Origin: Adineta vaga
Taxonomy: Eukaryota; Animalia; Rotifera
Direction: 5' to 3'
DNA length: 64,000 nt
Assembly: GCA_021613535.1 (NCBI GenBank)
Contig: CP075492.1
Location: 9,424,001 to 9,488,000, forward strand
Part shown: piece after piece, positions 17,496-26,944 of the stretch
Position numbering within the stretch: the first letter of the stretch is position 1
Layout: each line of letters opens with the position of its first letter
Notes under the pieces: model-generated
What the model was told of the DNA's origin: nothing
What the model saw: the letters and a program-made list of their open reading frames with translations, nothing else
Databases searched by the model: none
Program-made: the position numbers and the translations under genes

Positions 17496-19190
17496 TATTT
17501 TGACTTGATAAGTTTAAGAGAAAGTCGGAATATTGGATTTAGTAATGTTGATGATGACTAGAATAAGAAGAACAAACGGAAGATTCATTAGCATGCAAAA
17601 AAGAAGAAAATGAAGGCTTAACGAGAATAAATCTTCTGATTTCTAAGAGAGAAAAATGGTTTTCTTTCTCTGTCTCTCTATGTTTTTGAGTTTCAACAAA
17701 TCGGACATGAAAACCATAGGAGATTCTTTAGCAAAATATGCATTTTCATTTTCTTTCTTTTTCTCTCTTCTCTCTCTCTCTCTGCTAATACTATTCTCGT
17801 TTTAGCAGACAAATCCTTCTTTTTCCTAATGTGCGTTGGCGAAAGCTCATTCTATTTTTTTTGTCTCTATTTCGATTACACTCATCAAATGTGTTCTTGC
17901 AGCTTCAAACATAATCTCCATGGATGACAATCGTATCGGCTCCGACGAACAATTGCCAAATACCAAGCTGATAAATTGGTTTGGAATATAATAGACAGTA
18001 ACATAGTACCAATCAGACTAAGATTGACGAAATATTCTATTCAGAAAAAAAAACAATTATAGCTTCCAATGACATTCATAATGATTGATTTTTTCAGTGA
18101 ATAGATATTCGAAACATATTGAAAGGCAATGTCGAAAATATCTAAAGATGATTTAGTACTTTTACTCACTAGAGAATAATAAATATTTTATAACTGAACT
18201 ATTCAGAAGACACATGTCATATTTCTTTATTTTTCGATGTGATACTATTGAAATTCTTTTATTAATATGAGAAACACTGTTTCATTTTTTAAACGGCCAA
18301 TACCACGAGTACAAGAACGTCGATAGTAACGGCAATATATTGACACTTGCTTAAGAGACAATTATTCTAATGTTTTTTTCAATTAGCATTGTTACATGGT
18401 GATTGTTCATCACATGATGGAATATTTCAAGATATGTAGAGTGCTTCGGAATGGCATTGTTGCGAATGGCATTCGATCTATGAAATTGAGTAGATATATA
18501 TATATATGTCATAGTGTTTTTTTTTCAATCATCAAAAATCAATCAGAAATAATTGGTAAAATAAGCACAGCCATAATTGATTCGAACTTATACGTATTTC
18601 GTCGTAGTTACAATTAGTATCGATGGGTTATTTAGTATGAAAAGCATCTTTAGAAAAATGTTTTAATCTAAATGTGCACTTCGACTTCGTGATGTTATAA
18701 TGAAGAATCCTGTTGAGATCACGGTGCATTATTGAAATCTGTTTAAAAGGACTCTAATAAAATAAGATCTGCAATTATAGCCTTTTAATACTTACAGCTT
18801 GAAAGTTTCATTCAATGGAAGTCATCCTGTGCACGTATTTTGAAAATACTTGATGATGATGATGATGTCAGAATGATATCTTTTAATTTGTTGAGATTGT
18901 CATATGTTTTTCTTTTTTAAGTTTTCAAAAAGAGAGACGCACGAAACAACAACAAAAAAACTTCCACCAGAACAAATCACGAAATGTCTAGAAGAAAGAA
19001 CAGACGACATACATAACATAAACCGGTCGAATAAACACAAATGAAAGTAAGACAAAGAGAAAAACAAAGATTTCATGTAGAATTCGCATAACTTCATTCT
19101 TTATATTTAAACGAATGTTACTCAAATTAACCTAGTTGAATCTGAGAAAAAGAATATCTTTGTTCTTTTTTTATTTTTGTGTAAAGTTGT

Positions 19191-20868
19191 TTAAGAATTT
19201 CCCGCACTGAGAATTTTAAAAAATCGAACAAATTTTGCCACAAAAAAGTTTATAATAAAATACCAAAGATTTCTTGCTGTTGGTCGTTTAGATATAAATA
19301 TTCTCCAAAGAAGAACAAGTATAATTGTGTTAAATGTCCATCGAATATTTCTCAAATTATTCAAATGTTTTTGTGCACCATTTAAACATTGAATATCTTC
19401 ATTTAAAACATAACGTTTTGTTCCAATTAAAAACGATTCAATATATGTTGGCCAATGTAATGCACGTATATCGAAATAAAACTCATTTGACATATTATTT
19501 TCAGTTAATAATTGCCTTAAAGAATTAACACTATCATATGAACATTGAATTTCACCTCGAATTGTAAATGATTCAAGTGCAAGAAGTGTTTGATGTAAAT
19601 TTTTATAGATATTAACTATATGTGGTTTACGACCAATACAACGTAAACCAATATCAGCAAGATAAGCCGGAATTAAATGAGAAAAGAAAACATATGAATC
19701 ATGTAATAAACTATGACTTGTTACAGATAGATTTGGCCGACGAAAAGCATGTTCATAGGGAATTCGTTTCGAATATTCTGTTAAATAATTACTCATTTCT
19801 TGCCAATGAAATGGATTTAAACCACTTGATGTACAATGATAAATTGTCATTTGATCAGTATTGTCTTCGAAAGATTTTTGCCAAGCAGCAGATATTAATA
19901 AATTCACAGGTATATCAACGGGAACGATATCGAGTATATCATGTGAATCACCTTTCATTGAACGTAAATAACCTCGACCAGCAGCAACAAATAGTTCACT
20001 TGGACCATTGGATTTTTCTACCCAACCAGGATACGGTTCTTTCCATGCTGCACCAATAATCGATACACGAACGATTGATAATGCTGGTAAATGTTTTTGT
20101 TCTTCGGAAAGAAGTGTTTCTGCAAGCCAATGAGAAAATGAAAATACATTTGGTTTTGGTCCAATTAATTTTGGTGTTGCTAATCCAACCATTTCTGTAT
20201 CCATCCAATCAAGTGTTTGAACTAATTTCTCAGGTTCAATAGAACATGGATAGATACATTCATCAATATATGGACAATCTAAATCACATTTTAAATAAAA
20301 ATTGATTTCAATCAAATCTAATCGTTCACTTACCAATATTTGCATATATAGATGATAGATAAACAATTGATTTCAATTTCGTACATGTTTTGAGAAAATT
20401 TAAATTACTTCTAAGATTCATCACATTGGTTTGAACCATGTCTTTTAAATTTTGTTCTTCAATATCAATGGAATTATTTGCCATATAGAAACATAGATCA
20501 ATTGTTTCTTGTAATTTTCTAGTTGATAAAATATCCGAGTGATTTTCTACTTGTTCAATATCATTAGTTTCATCATTAGATGATGAAAATAAAATGTTTA
20601 TATCAAATGGAAGAATTTTTTCTTGAAATTTCGCATTATTACATCGTACTCGTTCGAATAATTTCGTTGTATAGATTTCAGCAAATGTGTCTATTGGTGA
20701 AAGATGATGTTTCGACTTTGTTGTAGTTGTATCTATTGGACAATAGATTTTCTTAATAGTTGGACATGAACGTAAGAGTTTTTCAAGTAGAACTTTGCCT
20801 GGAAATGTTGTTGAACCAAAAATTAAAATATTCTTTTCGGCATAGAAATCGTTAATAGACGACGACAT
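19191..20868 (-). CDS. Fatty acyl-CoA reductase family protein (NAD_binding_4 + Sterile domain) with degenerate catalytic motifs, 2 exons
   Basis: GKVLLEKLLRSCP, IIGAAWKEPYPGW, DIVPVD and YHCTSSGLNPFHW. An intron near 20279-20333 joins YANI/DCPYIDE. Confidence 0.9.
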
Positions 20869-21137
20869 GATCGATTGAATATACTGAAATCTGAAAGAAA
20901 CAAAAAAAGTCGATTTCTCCTACACAATGAATGCACTTTGTTCGTTCTATTCGATGACAAATATCTTGTTATTTTTTTTTATGTTTGGTGTTGCTACCAT
21001 CCACCTTTCCTTCTTTCCTTCTCGTCACTGATTCGTACGTACATCGAGTTTATGTAACCAGTAGCTATAGAGAATGAAGAAAGAACAAAACACAGACGAA
21101 ATTTTCTTCTTTTTTTTTGATTTATTGAAAAAATCTC

Positions 21138-23398
21138 CTAAACAAGTTTCACATTATGAGCACTTTCTAATGAAGAATTCTTTTGAATGGTTCTTAAACG
21201 TTGTCGATCTTGCTTATTTAAATTACCATTACGATTCAATAGATCAAGTGCATCACTTAAACATTCATAACCGAATTCATTGATTGTTTCGATAATATCT
21301 AAAGCACGATCGATATAATTCTTTTTCGTAGCTAATGATAATAATGACATAAGACTTCGTTCATTCAATGGATTAATTAATGTATTTCGATTGGATAAAT
21401 AATATTCATATAATGACCAACTTGCTTCCCAATCATCTGCTGGTATTAACAAGGAGATTAGATTTGATAATAAATGTCCATCGTATTCAAATTTTTGTTG
21501 AAATGGTCGAAGTTGAGTTTTTCGTTGTTGATCAGCAGTTGTTTCTTGTTGTTGATTATCATTTGTATTATTCAATTGTTGTTCAGATTCTTCCGATTGT
21601 AAAGGAAATCGTTTTAAAACTTGACGTGCTATATTTGCATATTGTTTCATTTGTTCATCGGAAAGTTTCTCTTGAGTAGTTCGTACAAGTAAGAATAAAT
21701 ATCGATCGAGAATTCGACGATTATTTTGTCGATGATCAATAAAACCTAACATCAATAAATCTGACCAAAGACGAACATAATACTCTTTGATATTCCATGT
21801 TGAAATAAATTCAATCAGATCTTCGACAACATTCATCGATGGAGAATAGATATTCGGTACGGCAGATTCCCAAAGTGGTAGAACATGTTCGGGAATATCT
21901 ACGCGAAAAAGTAAACGAAATAAATTCGCATAATACATTTGTTCTTTGAATCCATCAGGAATAAATCGACTATTTGAACCCTTCATTAGAAAACGATGAA
22001 TACGTTTAGCTAGATAATAAAAGCAAAATTTTGAGTAGTAATCTATATTTTAGAATCAACAATTCTTGTTCTATTTTCTTACCTAGATCAATATCTCGAC
22101 AATTTACTGTTGCTTTAAACATTGCATTAAAAAAGAATTCACTATCATCAATATCTTTCCATTCGAATTGATTTCCATTTAATTCATATTGTTTTTCTAA
22201 TTCATCGATAATCTGTGGTAAAATTTGTGTTTCATATCCAAGTTGATCATTTGGATAGAATATCATGATCAGATGTGCCCATGAACCAAGTGATGGTTCA
22301 ATTCCACATTGTCGCATTTCATTTAAGAGTGCTAATGCTAATGCTGGACCACGTTCATAGGTTGAACAACGTCTTAATGTATAAAGTATTGAATTAAATG
22401 TACGTAGATTCGGTTGAATAGAATTTTGTTTCATTTCTTGTAAACAATCGAGAATAAATTGCCAACGCATATCATAGGATTCTTTTATATAAGAAGTTGA
22501 ACGTAAAAGATAATTATATGTTGTTAAATCAATTGGGATATTTGCTTGTTTCATTTCTTCAATAGTTGTCATTGCTTTTTCAATATGATTGTATTTAAGT
22601 AAACCACTAGCAAATGAATTATAAAGACGAGTTTTTTGTTCATTTGTTGCTGTTTGTTTTAATTCTTCAAACATTTGTTCAGCAAGACCATTCTCTTTCC
22701 ATGTTCGTTTGATTGAACCTTAAAATACCAAGAGATTCATAACCAATGACGATATACTGCGAAAATCAAATCATTTGTCCTATGTACTTGTTCTATCCTT
22801 AGTTTTCTTTTCTCTATCATATTTTACCTGCTTGATTTGTTTCAAATAAATCTCGTCTATACCAATCTTCTTCTGGTAATAAAGCTTCCATTGGATTGTC
22901 ACTATTGTAAATACATAGTAAATCGAATAATGCATATTTGCATGAATCTGCTATATCAATTTTATCTTCTAAACATTTTTTATAAATTTCATATGCTTTG
23001 GTAATTTTATTCCAATTCATTAATTTATATAAAGTTGTTTCATCGGGTTCGATGAATTCATTTTCATTAAATGTATAGTTAGGAAAATAAGATGGAATCG
23101 ATGGTGTAGCAACATCATGAAAAAATGCGTAAGAATATCGATCAATAATCCATCGTGCTGCTTTTTTACCTGATGCTTTTGATAATGCTAATTGTCGTTT
23201 TTCATGTGAAGATGTTGGGATTAGAAATGGATCATCCATGAATAGATAAGCAGGATTGCCACCATCTTGTTGAACACATGAATTCAATGATTCAAGAATA
23301 GCTGTTGATGAACGTTCGAGACGTTGAGGATAAGTAAAACTTGTCGCACGAGTTGCATTCGATGTTGAAGCAAAACGATGAAATACTCTTAATAACAT
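21138..23398 (-). CDS. PTCD3: Pentatricopeptide repeat protein PTCD3 / mitoribosomal mS39, multi-exon
   Basis: Mitochondrial presequence-like N-terminus, ERSSTAILESL...YLFMDDPFLIPTS...LALSKASGKKAARWI, and PPR repeats (PNLRTFNSIL, EMRQCGIEPSLGSW). Confidence 0.9.
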
Positions 23399-23509
23399 TC
23401 AATCAATTTCAAATTTTCCTATTTATCTGAAGAAAAAAAAGAGAAAGAAGAAAATAAATTTTTTTTTTTGAAAATCAAATCAAAATGTCTTTCGAAAAAA
23501 AAATTTCAT

Positions 23510-24625
23510 TTAATTACTCCAAAGAGCACCGCCAATTGAATTCATTTTTGCTCCAGTTACTGAAGCTAAAACATTCGGTCGCTTTTGTATACGTAATAGA
23601 CCAATGAATGCCATAATTAAAGCTTCTTTGAAATCGATAATATTCTTCTCGGGATATATCATTTCAATACCGAATTTGTCTCGAAGTCGATTTTGTAGAC
23701 ATTGAAATAAATATTTATTATGTGCACCACCACCTGTAATTAACATTTTACAATTCATATAAGTTGATTTGTCTTGCTTTTCTTTTTCAATCATCATTTC
23801 AATTGAATTACAGATTTGTTGAATAATATGTTCAACATATGTATGTAAAAGATCATTGATATTGTCTTTTTCCAATTCAATTAATGGATAAATAATATCC
23901 AAACCAAATGAATTCGATAATGATTTTGGATACAAAGTTTTATAATAATCCAATTGATTTAATTTATCCAATAGTATTTGATTAATCTTTCCAGTTGAAG
24001 CATATTGACCATCTTCATCATATTCTTTTTGAAGATATTGTTGAGTAAGCTTATTCAATATACGATTTGCAGGACATATATCAAATGCAATTTGATAATT
24101 TTGATCAGTTAAATTCGCAATTCCACCAATATTTAATAAGAGTCGATATTCATTAAATAAATATTTTTCACCAATTGGAACAATCGGTGCACCTTGACCA
24201 CCATATGCAACATCCATAGCACGTAAATCATTAACAACGACTAAACGAGTTTGTGCACTAATTGCAGCACCATCACCAATTTGTCCAGTCATTCGATTCC
24301 ATGGTTCATGAAAAACTGTATGACCATGTGATACAACAAGATCAATTTTTTCTACATCTAATTTATATTTAGCAAGAAAATCATTCACACATTCACCCAA
24401 ATAATGTCCGTATGATGTATGTAAAAGAAGATAAGATCGAGCATCTAATTCTGTAGCTGTCGATAATCTATTCATCCAATCAGATGAATAAGGTATCGTT
24501 TCAGCATGGACAATTTGAAATGTCCATGTTTCCGAAGGATGATTTTCAATCAAAGAAAAATCTACACAAGCAATATCAAGTCCATCTAATGAACTTCCAC
24601 TCATCAGACCAATTACACGTGGCAT
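23510..24625 (-). CDS. anmK: Anhydro-N-acetylmuramic acid kinase, intronless, bacterial type
   Basis: IGLMSGSSLDGLDIA, SHGHTVFH, QIGDGA, DLRAMDVAYGGQGAPIVP, LNIGGIAN, AFDICPAN, ITGGGAHN and KEALIMAFIG...NVLASVTGA. Likely ATG at 24625. Confidence 0.95.
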   Translation of the reverse strand: MPRVIGLMSGSSLDGLDIACVDFSLIENHPSETWTFQIVHAETIPYSSDWMNRLSTATELDARSYLLLHTSYGHYLGECVNDFLAKYKLDVEKIDLVVSHGHTVFHEPWNRMTGQIGDGAAISAQTRLVVVNDLRAMDVAYGGQGAPIVPIGEKYLFNEYRLLLNIGGIANLTDQNYQIAFDICPANRILNKLTQQYLQKEYDEDGQYASTGKINQILLDKLNQLDYYKTLYPKSLSNSFGLDIIYPLIELEKDNINDLLHTYVEHIIQQICNSIEMMIEKEKQDKSTYMNCKMLITGGGAHNKYLFQCLQNRLRDKFGIEMIYPEKNIIDFKEALIMAFIGLLRIQKRPNVLASVTGAKMNSIGGALWSN

Positions 24626-24777
24626 GACTTTTGTTTTTCTTTCTTTTCTAAGCAGCAAGGAATTTTATACCTGATCGTCTCACGTAACTAACAACCTAGA
24701 ATATTTCAATACGAGAATTAAACAGAAACAAAAGAGAGATAATAAAGATTTTAATGATGAAATTAAGAAAACAAATA

Positions 24778-26460
24778 TCATCTGATTAAATTTCGAACAA
24801 AAAAAACATCAGAAGAAAGTTGTTCAAGTAAATCCAATTGTTTTTCATCGTCAATATCGTTTTGATTGATCAATAGCACCAATTGTAAACGAACAAATGT
24901 ATCCAATAAATTCATTTCTTCATCGGTTAATCGTACAAGTTCTTCATAAGCTTTAACAATTTCTTTGACTTTATCAACAAATAAATCAATATCAGTTAAA
25001 AATATCGATGTTAAGTCCATTAGATAGGATGATTGTTGATTTGTCATCCATTGAAGACCGGTTTCTAATTGTTCAGATATTTGCTGTTGACATGTAAATA
25101 GATTCGATAGAAGAAATGGAAAACTATTCTTCTTTTTTTCAAGTATAGATGCATATTGTTCATTGAACCAATGTTTATCGAGAGAATTAGTTGAAGAAGT
25201 CTTTGTAGCTAAACGCCATTGAGCTAAGAAACGAGCAATTTGATGATTTGATGAAAGATCATTATGATTAATAACAACGATATTAAATTGATTAATAGAT
25301 TCATTAAGAATTGTTGAAGTTAGTTGAAATGAAGAAAAAATAGATTGTAATTGTTCACGAGTGATGGACATTTGTGGAATTAATTTCATGATATATTTCT
25401 TTTCTGAAATAACGGAATACATTGTTGAATTGATTTTTTCTAGAGAGGAAATTTTTGTTTGATATGTTGATTCAAATAATTCCTTCAATTGTTCTTCGTG
25501 ATTCGACGATATTTCAATTTCCATTTTTTCCTATAAAAAAAACAAACATGAAATCATTATTCTAATTAAGAATTATTTGATATATGTTACCATTGTTCGT
25601 GAATTCACTTCATTGGCAATATGTTCAAATCTTCCAACTGATATTCCAGTAAAACGTTTACCAATACGAATAATTCGTTCATACAAATCTTTATTTTCTT
25701 CATAGAATTTTTCGTTCGTTCCCGTTAATTCTCGGAATGTTACAGCTATTCGTCTATCTTGTATATGTTGTCCTTGTATTGCATGTTTATATTCATATCT
25801 TGCATCACCATAAAGTACAATCATCCATCGACGTGGTAGTGGAATATAAATAATCTTTTTCGAATCTTTTTCATTAGGTATTAATGAAAGAATTGTATTT
25901 GAAAGTAGATTAATTGTTATTAAACGTTCACCCCAAATCCACGTATCATCAATATGTGGATCAATATGTGATCCACGTTCAGATGAATAATCTAAATTAC
26001 ATAATTCAACCGATTGAAAATCATTTAATACACGATGTGTTTGTAAACGTTGAAGAATTGATTTGGAATACATGGGCATACCAGTGAAGTATTTCGTTTT
26101 AATTGTTTGTTTTTTAAAATTTATTTTTATACCAAAATCTTGTTTTAGACGACCGGATTGAGATGAAATCCAAATATCCTTATCGATTGAATCGATAAGA
26201 TTTTGTTCTTCAATTTCATTGAGAAAATCCGAAGCAAGATAAATGCCATCTAATGGAAATGCAATTGCATCATTTCCAATATCGTCATGATGCGGACATT
26301 GAGATTTTAATTCATAAATATCCATACGAATTGCTTGCCGACATGCATCACAATAAATGTAGACAATATGTGATTGAAAATCATTAGTGTTATGATCTTT
26401 TTGTAGTTTACATGTATTACAGGAACGAATACCTTTACATGCACATGTAGAAGCGTACAT
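24778..26460 (-). CDS. ALKBH4: ALKBH4-like Fe(II)/2OG dioxygenase with a spliced C-terminal APH/homoserine-kinase-like remnant domain (intron 25531-25590)
   Basis: CACKGIRSCNTC, SQSGRLKQDFG, CNLDYSSERGSHIDPHIDDTWIWGERL, YEYKHAI and RIAVTFRE. A phase-0 60-bp GTAAC..ATAG intron joins NSRTM to EKMEIEIS (ORF 24778-25524). Confidence 0.85.
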
Positions 26461-26944
26461 TTTTGAAGAAATAACTGAATGAATGATGAAGAAATACTAT
26501 GTATGATGGTATACAGAGGGCGCCATTGGTAAAAATCCACTATGAACGATTAATTTTTTTCTTAATAAGCATAAAGAAAATCTTGGTAAAATTTTATTAG
26601 TTTATGAAAAGAAGATTATTATTGATAGATGCTAAACGATAGGTAACAATGGTAGAATTCAACCAATAGAACATTTGTTCTTAGTTCTTCGTTACATATC
26701 ATAAATTATCAATATCATGGTCGGTAGAATTGAAATATTTTTCTAAAAATTACATGATGTACTGTGTAATTATATTTACTGTTTTGAATAATGTGATCCG
26801 ATGTAAACTCAATCGGATAACAAAAGTTTTGCATTCATAGTATTTTCAATTGATAAAATCTTCGTTCTCCGTTCGTTTCTTTTTGAATAATTCATCTTTT
26901 GTTTTTATTCTAGAAAGGAATTTTCGATTGCTTTTTATAAAACA
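26461..26944. promoter_or_regulatory. Probable bidirectional promoter between ALKBH4 and RSRC2
   Basis: Head-to-head arrangement with 484 bp between the start codons. Confidence 0.4.

Follow-up and report, generated by a model that had tools for sequence, protein, structure and literature searches.

Structure of the fusion gene in Adineta vaga

The bdelloid rotifer Adineta vaga carries a gene in which an ALKBH4-type dioxygenase appears to be joined in frame to a kinase-like C-terminal domain, referred to here as the tail. The gene lies in a stretch of 64,000 nucleotides (contig CP075492.1 of assembly GCA_021613535.1, positions 9,424,001 to 9,488,000), the whole of which is called the window; the window is AT-rich (30% GC) and is located on contig 3 of an assembly of six contigs and 100.8 Mb. 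All positions below are window coordinates, and the fusion gene is encoded on the minus strand. The open reading frame (ORF) listing contains two frames at this place, 25573-26460 (-), which encodes 295 amino acids (aa), and 24778-25524 (-), which encodes 248 aa. The spliced gene comprises the following features:

25591..26460, minus strand: exon 1, an ALKBH4/NMAD-1-type 2-oxoglutarate (2OG)-Fe(II) dioxygenase of 290 codons, ending in phase 0 and 100% identical to residues 1-290 of the public protein P0041
25531..25590, minus strand: phase-0 intron of 60 nt, GTAACA...TTTTATAG, with an in-frame TAA at 25573-25575
24778..25530, minus strand: exon 2, consisting of the linker codons for E and K, the 248-codon kinase-like domain, and the stop codon, 100% identical to residues 291-540 of P0041

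With slashes marking the intron ends, the junction on the minus strand reads ..ACA ATG / GTAACATAT...TTTTTTTATAG / GAA AAA ATG GAA... The intron is of the GT..AG type, with the donor G at 25590 and the acceptor G at 25531, and exon 2 begins two codons upstream of the ATG, in frame. Excision of the 60 nt drops the TAA codon and preserves the frame. The public A. vaga protein P0041 (I4U23_013751, a "hypothetical protein" of 540 aa) represents the joined form; the two exons, which were compared separately, together account for it exactly, indicating that the deposited annotation already uses the 25531-25590 intron.

Conservation of the fusion among bdelloid rotifers

A search with a natural fused protein showed that the fused architecture occurs, at lengths of 494-559 aa, in at least 16 sequence clusters, including gene models from A. 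ricciae (540 aa), Rotaria socialis (548 aa), and R. sordida (557 aa). The deposited models of these three species and of A. vaga, which range from 540 to 557 aa, are labelled as hypothetical or Fe2OG-domain proteins. In five other bdelloid loci, an intron interrupts the gene at the phase-0 position used in A. vaga, and the six introns have the following lengths:

A. vaga, window: 60 nt
A. ricciae, locus L090: 50 nt
R. socialis, locus L089: 209 nt
Locus L002: 57 nt
Locus L005: 49 nt, lacking an in-frame stop
Locus L006: 49 nt

All six intron-bearing loci share a GTA or GTG donor that lies at a codon boundary, exactly at the end of protein conservation, and an acceptor AG followed by GAn nnn ATG, which places the AG 6 nt upstream of the ATG. 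Because four of the introns (49, 49, 50, and 209 nt) are not multiples of three, the two ORFs lie in different DNA frames at these loci, and splicing alone restores the frame. The intron is precisely missing from two genomic contigs, on which the fusion is an uninterrupted ORF (533 aa on L007 and 541 aa on L088), and the alignment of these intronless proteins with the intron-bearing ones is free of gaps over the junction. The junction in the L007 group reads ..IPEKIESN.., with Ile replacing the Met of A. vaga, so the tail cannot start independently there. A phase-0 junction that recurs in five loci, with four introns that are not multiples of three and a site that is absent from two intronless ORFs, is more than chance would produce. 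Judged by sequence comparison, the evidence for cis-splicing over 25531-25590 appears strong, and the occurrence of the fusion in intron-bearing and intronless bdelloid lineages alike indicates that it is old.

Adineta steineri is represented by a partial public model of 699 aa (P0040), in which ALKBH4, the tail, and part of the downstream gene for anhydro-N-acetylmuramic acid kinase (AnmK) are merged; this probably reflects over-joining by the gene predictor in a tightly packed cluster. The same kind of error could be suspected in A. vaga, where a spliced-leader operon running on into AnmK and mS39 would then carry the 295-aa ALKBH4, which stops at 25573, and the 248-aa ORF as two separate cistrons, and the 540-aa model would be an artefact. 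The A. steineri model shows that predictors over-join here, and the tight packing of the co-directional genes and the acceptor upstream of the ATG also fit such an operon. However, separate cistrons leave unexplained why a GTA/GTG donor is conserved at the codon boundary where protein conservation stops, why the frame is restored over introns of 49, 49, 50, and 209 nt, and why two intronless genomic ORFs align without gaps, which makes the absence of a fusion in A. vaga very unlikely.

Read from the sequence, retention of the A. vaga intron gives a 295-aa ALKBH4 with the extra residues VTYIK before the stop, and an ALKBH4-only isoform may possibly arise in this way. Such an isoform cannot be a conserved feature, because the intron is absent from two lineages and, in L005, carries no stop codon in frame.

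The tail also occurs as a stand-alone gene. Rotaria sp. Silwood2 encodes it as a 257-aa protein (CAF3291262; L003 5990-6774, L004 4657-5430), and this gene keeps the acceptor, tttttag/GATAAAATG. In neither of two assemblies was an ALKBH4 found upstream of it, over 6 kb on L003 and 4.6 kb on L004; an Arf gene model is present there instead. The ratio of nonsynonymous to synonymous substitution rates (dN/dS) between the Silwood2 and R. socialis tails is about 0.27, which denotes purifying selection, and the stand-alone gene seems to be the product of a natural fission of the fused gene.

A dual output of the locus would add to the single-protein reading rather than replace it: alongside the cis-spliced fusion, addition of a spliced leader at the acceptor 25531 could release a free 248-aa tail, and further messages that end in or retain the intron could encode ALKBH4 only. 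Three observations are consistent with this arrangement: each of the seven loci that have the intron or its acceptor keeps an ATG 6 nt past that acceptor, the Silwood2 gene has the same acceptor and is itself under purifying selection, and a retained intron would give a 295-aa ALKBH4. On the other side, the lineages with an uninterrupted ORF cannot make separate products in this manner, the L007 group does not even have the Met, the L005 intron does not contain an in-frame stop, and no canonical AATAAA was found within the 60 nt of the A. vaga intron. Dual output is possible, and we regard it as a tentative addition to the cis-spliced fusion.

These comparisons agree with the first-pass annotation of the window, which had proposed a 60-bp phase-0 GT-AG intron at 25531-25590 that removes the ALKBH4 stop: the coordinates and the phase are correct in the minus-strand sequence, and the proposed in-frame fusion to the 248-aa ORF is supported by the public 540-aa model and by the comparative loci. 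The kinase-like motifs that it quoted are all present in this ORF.

The ALKBH4 domain

ALKBH4 has a debated activity, with both actin lysine demethylation and the removal of N6-methyladenine (6mA) from DNA having been reported. Exon 1 matches PDB entry 8hb2 ("DNA N6-methyl adenine demethylase") with an E value of 1.7e-47, compared with only about 1e-3 for ALKBH5, ALKBH7, and ALKBH8 chains. Among the AlkB homologs it is closest to ALKBH4; every named non-rotifer match is an ALKBH4, and the vertebrate ALKBH4 proteins match at about E 1e-60. Xenopus ALKBH4 is 36% identical to exon 1, and the two sequences share the Cys cluster, the iron ligands in HxD and KHAI, and the RRxxxTFRE motif. The iron ligands of the A. 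vaga protein are encoded at the following positions:

25948..25956, minus strand: Fe(II)-binding H-x-D (HID), invariant in 16/16 fused proteins and aligned with PH-x-DD of Xenopus ALKBH4
25783-25785, minus strand: third iron-ligand His, in YKHAI, invariant in 16/16 fused proteins and aligned with KHAI of Xenopus ALKBH4

The 2OG-binding Arg motif, RRIAVTFRE in exon 1, and the Cys cluster are likewise invariant in the 16 bdelloid proteins. Exon 1 does not reach the cut-off of the Pfam model PF13532 (2OG-FeII_Oxy_2), scoring 22.4 bits against 31.2. Most annotated vertebrate ALKBH4 entries also have no precomputed PF13532 match, so the shortfall is a weakness of the Pfam model and not of the protein.

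The bdelloid protein thus has the features by which ALKBH4/NMAD-1 proteins are recognized, namely the N-terminal Cys cluster CxCKGIRSC..C, SQSGRxKQDFG..NFKKQ, HxD...H, and RRxxxTFRE. It differs from the known members, which are single-domain proteins of about 290-330 aa, in the 250 residues that follow the dioxygenase; the C-terminus of vertebrate ALKBH4 falls about 15 residues short of the rotifer exon boundary, where the rotifer linker begins. On the basis of these sequence features, the dioxygenase domain of the bdelloid fusion is predicted to be catalytically intact. A search of the genome with the ALKBH4 exon found no second ALKBH4, and the fusion is therefore the sole ALKBH4 of this genome. 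The only other genomic match to this exon is on contig 6 at 288518-289054 (+) (L092; 25% identity, E 9e-9), an ORF that is distantly 2OG-oxygenase-like and presumably represents another AlkB homolog.

Predicted fold of the tail

Sequence profiles do not recognize the tail. No Pfam match to APH (PF01636), Choline_kinase, EcKL, or Fructosamin_kin was obtained at E values up to 10 for any of 12 members of the tail family, and searches of NCBIfam and of PDB profiles returned nothing. A full HMMER search of 1.84 billion representative proteins with the tail profile gave 14 matches, all of them rotifer-like or of low complexity, and in these sequence searches the tail family is restricted to bdelloid-like sequences. 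No paralogue of the tail was found in the genome, in which it is single-copy.

Structure prediction connects the tail with the APH/choline-kinase fold. An AlphaFold model built from a 12-sequence alignment (model 1; predicted local distance difference test score (pLDDT) 75.8, predicted template-modelling score (pTM) 0.75) consists of a five-stranded sheet and a helix, followed by seven helices, and a second model, built from the fused alignment (model 2), has a pLDDT of 80-93 over the tail. The two lobes occupy the following positions:

25255..25503, minus strand: N-lobe, domain residues 8-90, predicted as a beta sheet and one helix, matching APH N-lobes with Z 8.2-8.5 and a root-mean-square deviation of 2.6-2.7
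24781..25254, minus strand: helical C-lobe, domain residues 91-248, matching the C-lobes of 2ppq, 2q83, and 4ocj with Z 9.5-10.2

When model 1 was compared with the PDB by Foldseek, the top 50 matches were all APH/choline-kinase-fold enzymes, with LicA first (E 3e-5). VIA-align, an aligner independent of Foldseek, placed the type II homoserine kinase 2ppq (Z 10.2), the YtaA/CotS spore-coat kinase 2q83 (Z 10.0), and the N-acetylhexosamine 1-kinase 4ocj (Z 9.5) just below one giant protein for model 1; for model 2, it aligned 241 residues with 2ppq (Z 13.0), followed by 6ef6 (Z 11.9) and 2q83 (Z 11.5), and 46 of the top 50 matches had the APH/choline-kinase fold. The N-lobe and the C-lobe also match APH-fold kinases when they are aligned separately. 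Among ESM Atlas structures, template-modelling (TM) scores of 0.55-0.57 were obtained with CotS, YutH, and RdoA clusters that carry PF01636, and the clusters nearest to the tail in language-model features are also APH (PF01636, 0.92-0.93). The top structural match to the C-lobe is chain A of PDB entry 8rf9, residues 33-308 (Z 11.2 and 13.1), which is the N-terminal part of the 2642-residue "CgsiGP1".

From these models, assignment of the tail to the APH/choline-kinase fold is well supported. The predicted tail shares the bilobal fold and the order of structural elements with the kinases of this group (2ppq, 2q83, 4ocj, and the aminopropanol kinase 6ef6), and differs from them in having no PF01636 match and an identity of 10-12%. 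A narrower assignment is not warranted: 2ppq is the best named match (Z 13.0), but 6ef6, 2q83, 3dxq, 3att, and 4ocj are within 1-2 Z of it, and on model 1 the scores differ by no more than about 1 Z. Neither homoserine kinase nor hydroxylysine kinase, nor any other single subfamily, can therefore be singled out as the parent.

The best conserved part of the tail is the C-lobe, with the motifs LAxWRL, KKKNSYPFLLSNLFTC, YLxDL, LDTFxRL, and LLEQLSS. The N-lobe is partly or wholly deleted in five clusters (P0036, P0039, P0043, P0044, and P0045; alignment columns 330-420), while the C-lobe is kept in all, which suggests that the conserved function probably resides in the C-lobe. Codon alignments were made for each exon, and dN/dS was calculated from unsaturated pairs. 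The values of 0.10-0.36 for the tail indicate that it is under purifying selection; those for ALKBH4 are 0.07-0.19, and the tail evolves at two to three times the rate of ALKBH4.

Probable loss of the catalytic segment

The HxDxxxxN sequence (Brenner motif) that would be expected of an active kinase was not found in the tail, and no alignment column has a His in 40% or more of the 16 sequences. The segment at issue and two candidate N-lobe residues are located as follows:

25039..25068, minus strand: ten-residue link LETGLQWMTN, at the place expected for the HxDxxxxN loop and the strand with the Mg-binding Asp, the placement being deduced from helix order
25384-25386, minus strand: candidate beta3 Lys, K47, in a strand and kept in 15/16 sequences, its equivalence being based on position only
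25354-25356, minus strand: candidate alphaC Glu, E57, in the N-lobe helix and kept in 13/16 sequences, its equivalence likewise being positional only

In model 1, the link LETGLQWMTN connects the helices 135-152 and 163-175, with a low pLDDT at residues 154-157; in model 2, it forms a short hairpin. In whole-domain alignment, the tail spans 243 residues compared with 316 in 2ppq, and is thus about 70 residues shorter. The only invariant Asp nearby is D170, in YLxDL, which lies inside a helix in both models; as judged from its helix position and not from residue-level superposition, it fits the structural "yDla" Asp better than a metal ligand. On these models, the tail is predicted to be a pseudokinase that has lost canonical phosphotransfer.

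The tail could still be an enzyme, as in the case of some former pseudokinases, if it were an atypical kinase or nucleotidyl-transferase with a non-canonical site formed by K47, E57, E154, and D170. K47 (15/16) and E57 (13/16, with Asp in two further sequences) are retained even where the first N-lobe strands are lost; D170 is found in every sequence, and most have an acidic residue at position 154. Nevertheless, such an enzyme would have to work without HxDxxxxN, with neither a His nor an Asn conserved where one would be expected, and with an N-lobe of which P0045 keeps nothing and four further clusters have lost a large part. Residual catalysis is therefore considered unlikely, and a pseudokinase is the preferred interpretation of the tail.

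The first-pass annotation had described the domain as APH/homoserine-kinase-like, and the predicted structure bears out the fold, with 2ppq as the best named match; the Foldseek comparison that it had recommended for the C-terminal domain returned APH/choline-kinase enzymes for 50 of the 50 top matches. It had also noted that the HxD..N and DF catalytic segment appears to be deleted between LETG and YLMDL, and this gains indirect support from the absence of a conserved His, the link of about ten residues, and the length deficit of about 70 residues relative to 2ppq.

Gene neighbourhood and origin of the tail

The gene downstream of the fusion encodes AnmK (23510-24658 (-), about 150 nt away; Pfam E 7e-66 over 23510-24625 (-)), with an AG about 22 nt upstream of its ATG in the window. 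The order Ribul_P_3_epim, SMAP, ALKBH4-tail, AnmK, mS39/PTCD3, and FAR-like reductase is conserved among bdelloids (L005, L006, L007, L088, L089, L090, and the window at 19000-26500), and the last four genes are co-directional and separated by short gaps. In every fetched bdelloid locus with an identifiable downstream gene, AnmK follows the fusion gene. The intronless loci have the same surroundings: Ribul_P_3_epim lies upstream on both L007 and L088, AnmK and mS39 lie downstream on L007, a cut, unidentified ORF lies downstream on L088, and the neighbours match those of the other bdelloid loci L005, L089, and L090.

Among 185,579 prokaryotic species, the closest relatives of the bdelloid AnmK belong to the Chitinophagales/Chitinophagaceae (47-52% identity), and AnmK looks like an old horizontal acquisition. 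This raises the question of whether the tail could have arrived with AnmK as a two-gene sugar-recycling cassette, made up of an AmgK/NahK-like anomeric kinase and AnmK, with the kinase decaying later and becoming fused to ALKBH4. The adjacency of AnmK in the bdelloid loci with an identifiable downstream gene, the bacterial affinity of AnmK (about 50% identity to Chitinophagales), and the structure clusters nearest to the tail, which are all bacterial and include an N-acetylhexosamine kinase among the top matches, accord with such a history. However, structure libraries are dominated by bacteria, and a bacterial nearest neighbour consequently carries little weight; the profile search of 1.84 billion proteins returned no bacterial relative of the tail, and the genes checked next to anmK encode SurE, UPRTase, EamA, and ATP-grasp proteins rather than APH kinases. 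Co-transfer of the tail with AnmK was rejected on the flanks of the 80 closest bacterial anmK loci, in which none of 740 ORFs resembles the tail profile (best E 0.25). A bacterial cassette origin of the tail is accordingly held to be highly improbable.

Interpretation and significance

Taken as a whole, the locus is best read as one cis-spliced gene for a 540-aa protein that combines an ALKBH4 dioxygenase with a bdelloid-specific APH-fold pseudokinase in an old fusion, a reading to which we assign a probability of roughly 80%. The single gene would be cis-spliced over the 60-nt intron to give a two-domain protein, the first domain of which would be an intact ALKBH4/NMAD-1-type 2OG-Fe(II) dioxygenase. 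The tail would have descended from a small-molecule kinase of the APH/choline-kinase fold that lost its catalytic loop. Instead of transferring phosphate, it may serve as a ligand-binding, substrate-docking, or regulatory module for the dioxygenase, and it would do so mainly through the conserved helical C-lobe, the lobe with which active relatives bind their substrates. The tail works like, or descends from, an APH-fold kinase without being a functional member of that family.

Several points weigh against this reading. The case for splicing in A. vaga consists of annotation and comparison, and the ATG 6 nt past the acceptor is retained in every intron-bearing locus. The kinase relationship of the tail has no sequence-level counterpart, the Foldseek TM scores of model 1 to PDB chains are low (0.3-0.4), and K47, E57, and D170 were placed without residue-level superposition on an active kinase. 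The full-length model is uninformative on contacts between the domains (pTM 0.50, with a pLDDT below 50 for the ALKBH4 part). Finally, the stand-alone gene of Silwood2 implies that the tail can also work and be expressed alone.

A partial precedent for the architecture is found in the animal proteins ACAD10 and ACAD11, in which an APH kinase domain is joined to an acyl-CoA dehydrogenase. As in the bdelloid fusion, an APH-fold domain and an unrelated oxidative enzyme share one polypeptide; in contrast, the kinase domain of ACAD10/ACAD11 is regarded as an active enzyme that provides the substrate of its partner, whereas the bdelloid tail lacks the catalytic loop and its partner is an AlkB-type dioxygenase.

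A more specific and speculative proposal is that the tail is a kinase turned ligand reader. The pocket of an amine kinase (of the homoserine, hydroxylysine, or choline type), together with the invariant aromatic residues W103, W119, W159, Y124, Y167, and Y193, might bind a methylated amine or metabolite and thereby steer or gate the sole ALKBH4, while the shared acceptor would select between the fused form, by cis-splicing, and the free form, by spliced-leader addition; the Silwood2 gene would then represent a natural fission.

To our knowledge, ALKBH4 is everywhere a single-domain protein outside the bdelloids. Full-text literature searches on ALKBH4/AlkB in bdelloids and on ALKBH4 with a pseudokinase found no description of the fusion. 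The first-pass annotation had called the fusion novel, which holds for the nature of the tail but not for the gene models, as fused proteins of 540-557 aa were already deposited; what appears to be new is the nature of the tail, which is undescribed and unannotated. The gain in annotation is accordingly small, since the models exist and the domain name alone is missing. For the classification of pseudokinases, the tail adds an APH-fold family that is invisible to sequence profiles.

Bdelloid rotifers have an unusual DNA methylation, including N4-methylcytosine (4mC) deposited by a horizontally acquired methyltransferase (PMC11065753, PMC10406627). A sole ALKBH4 that is permanently tied to a conserved pseudokinase offers a handle on the binding or control of ALKBH4, and the ligand or partner of the tail, once found, would point to the real substrate of ALKBH4.

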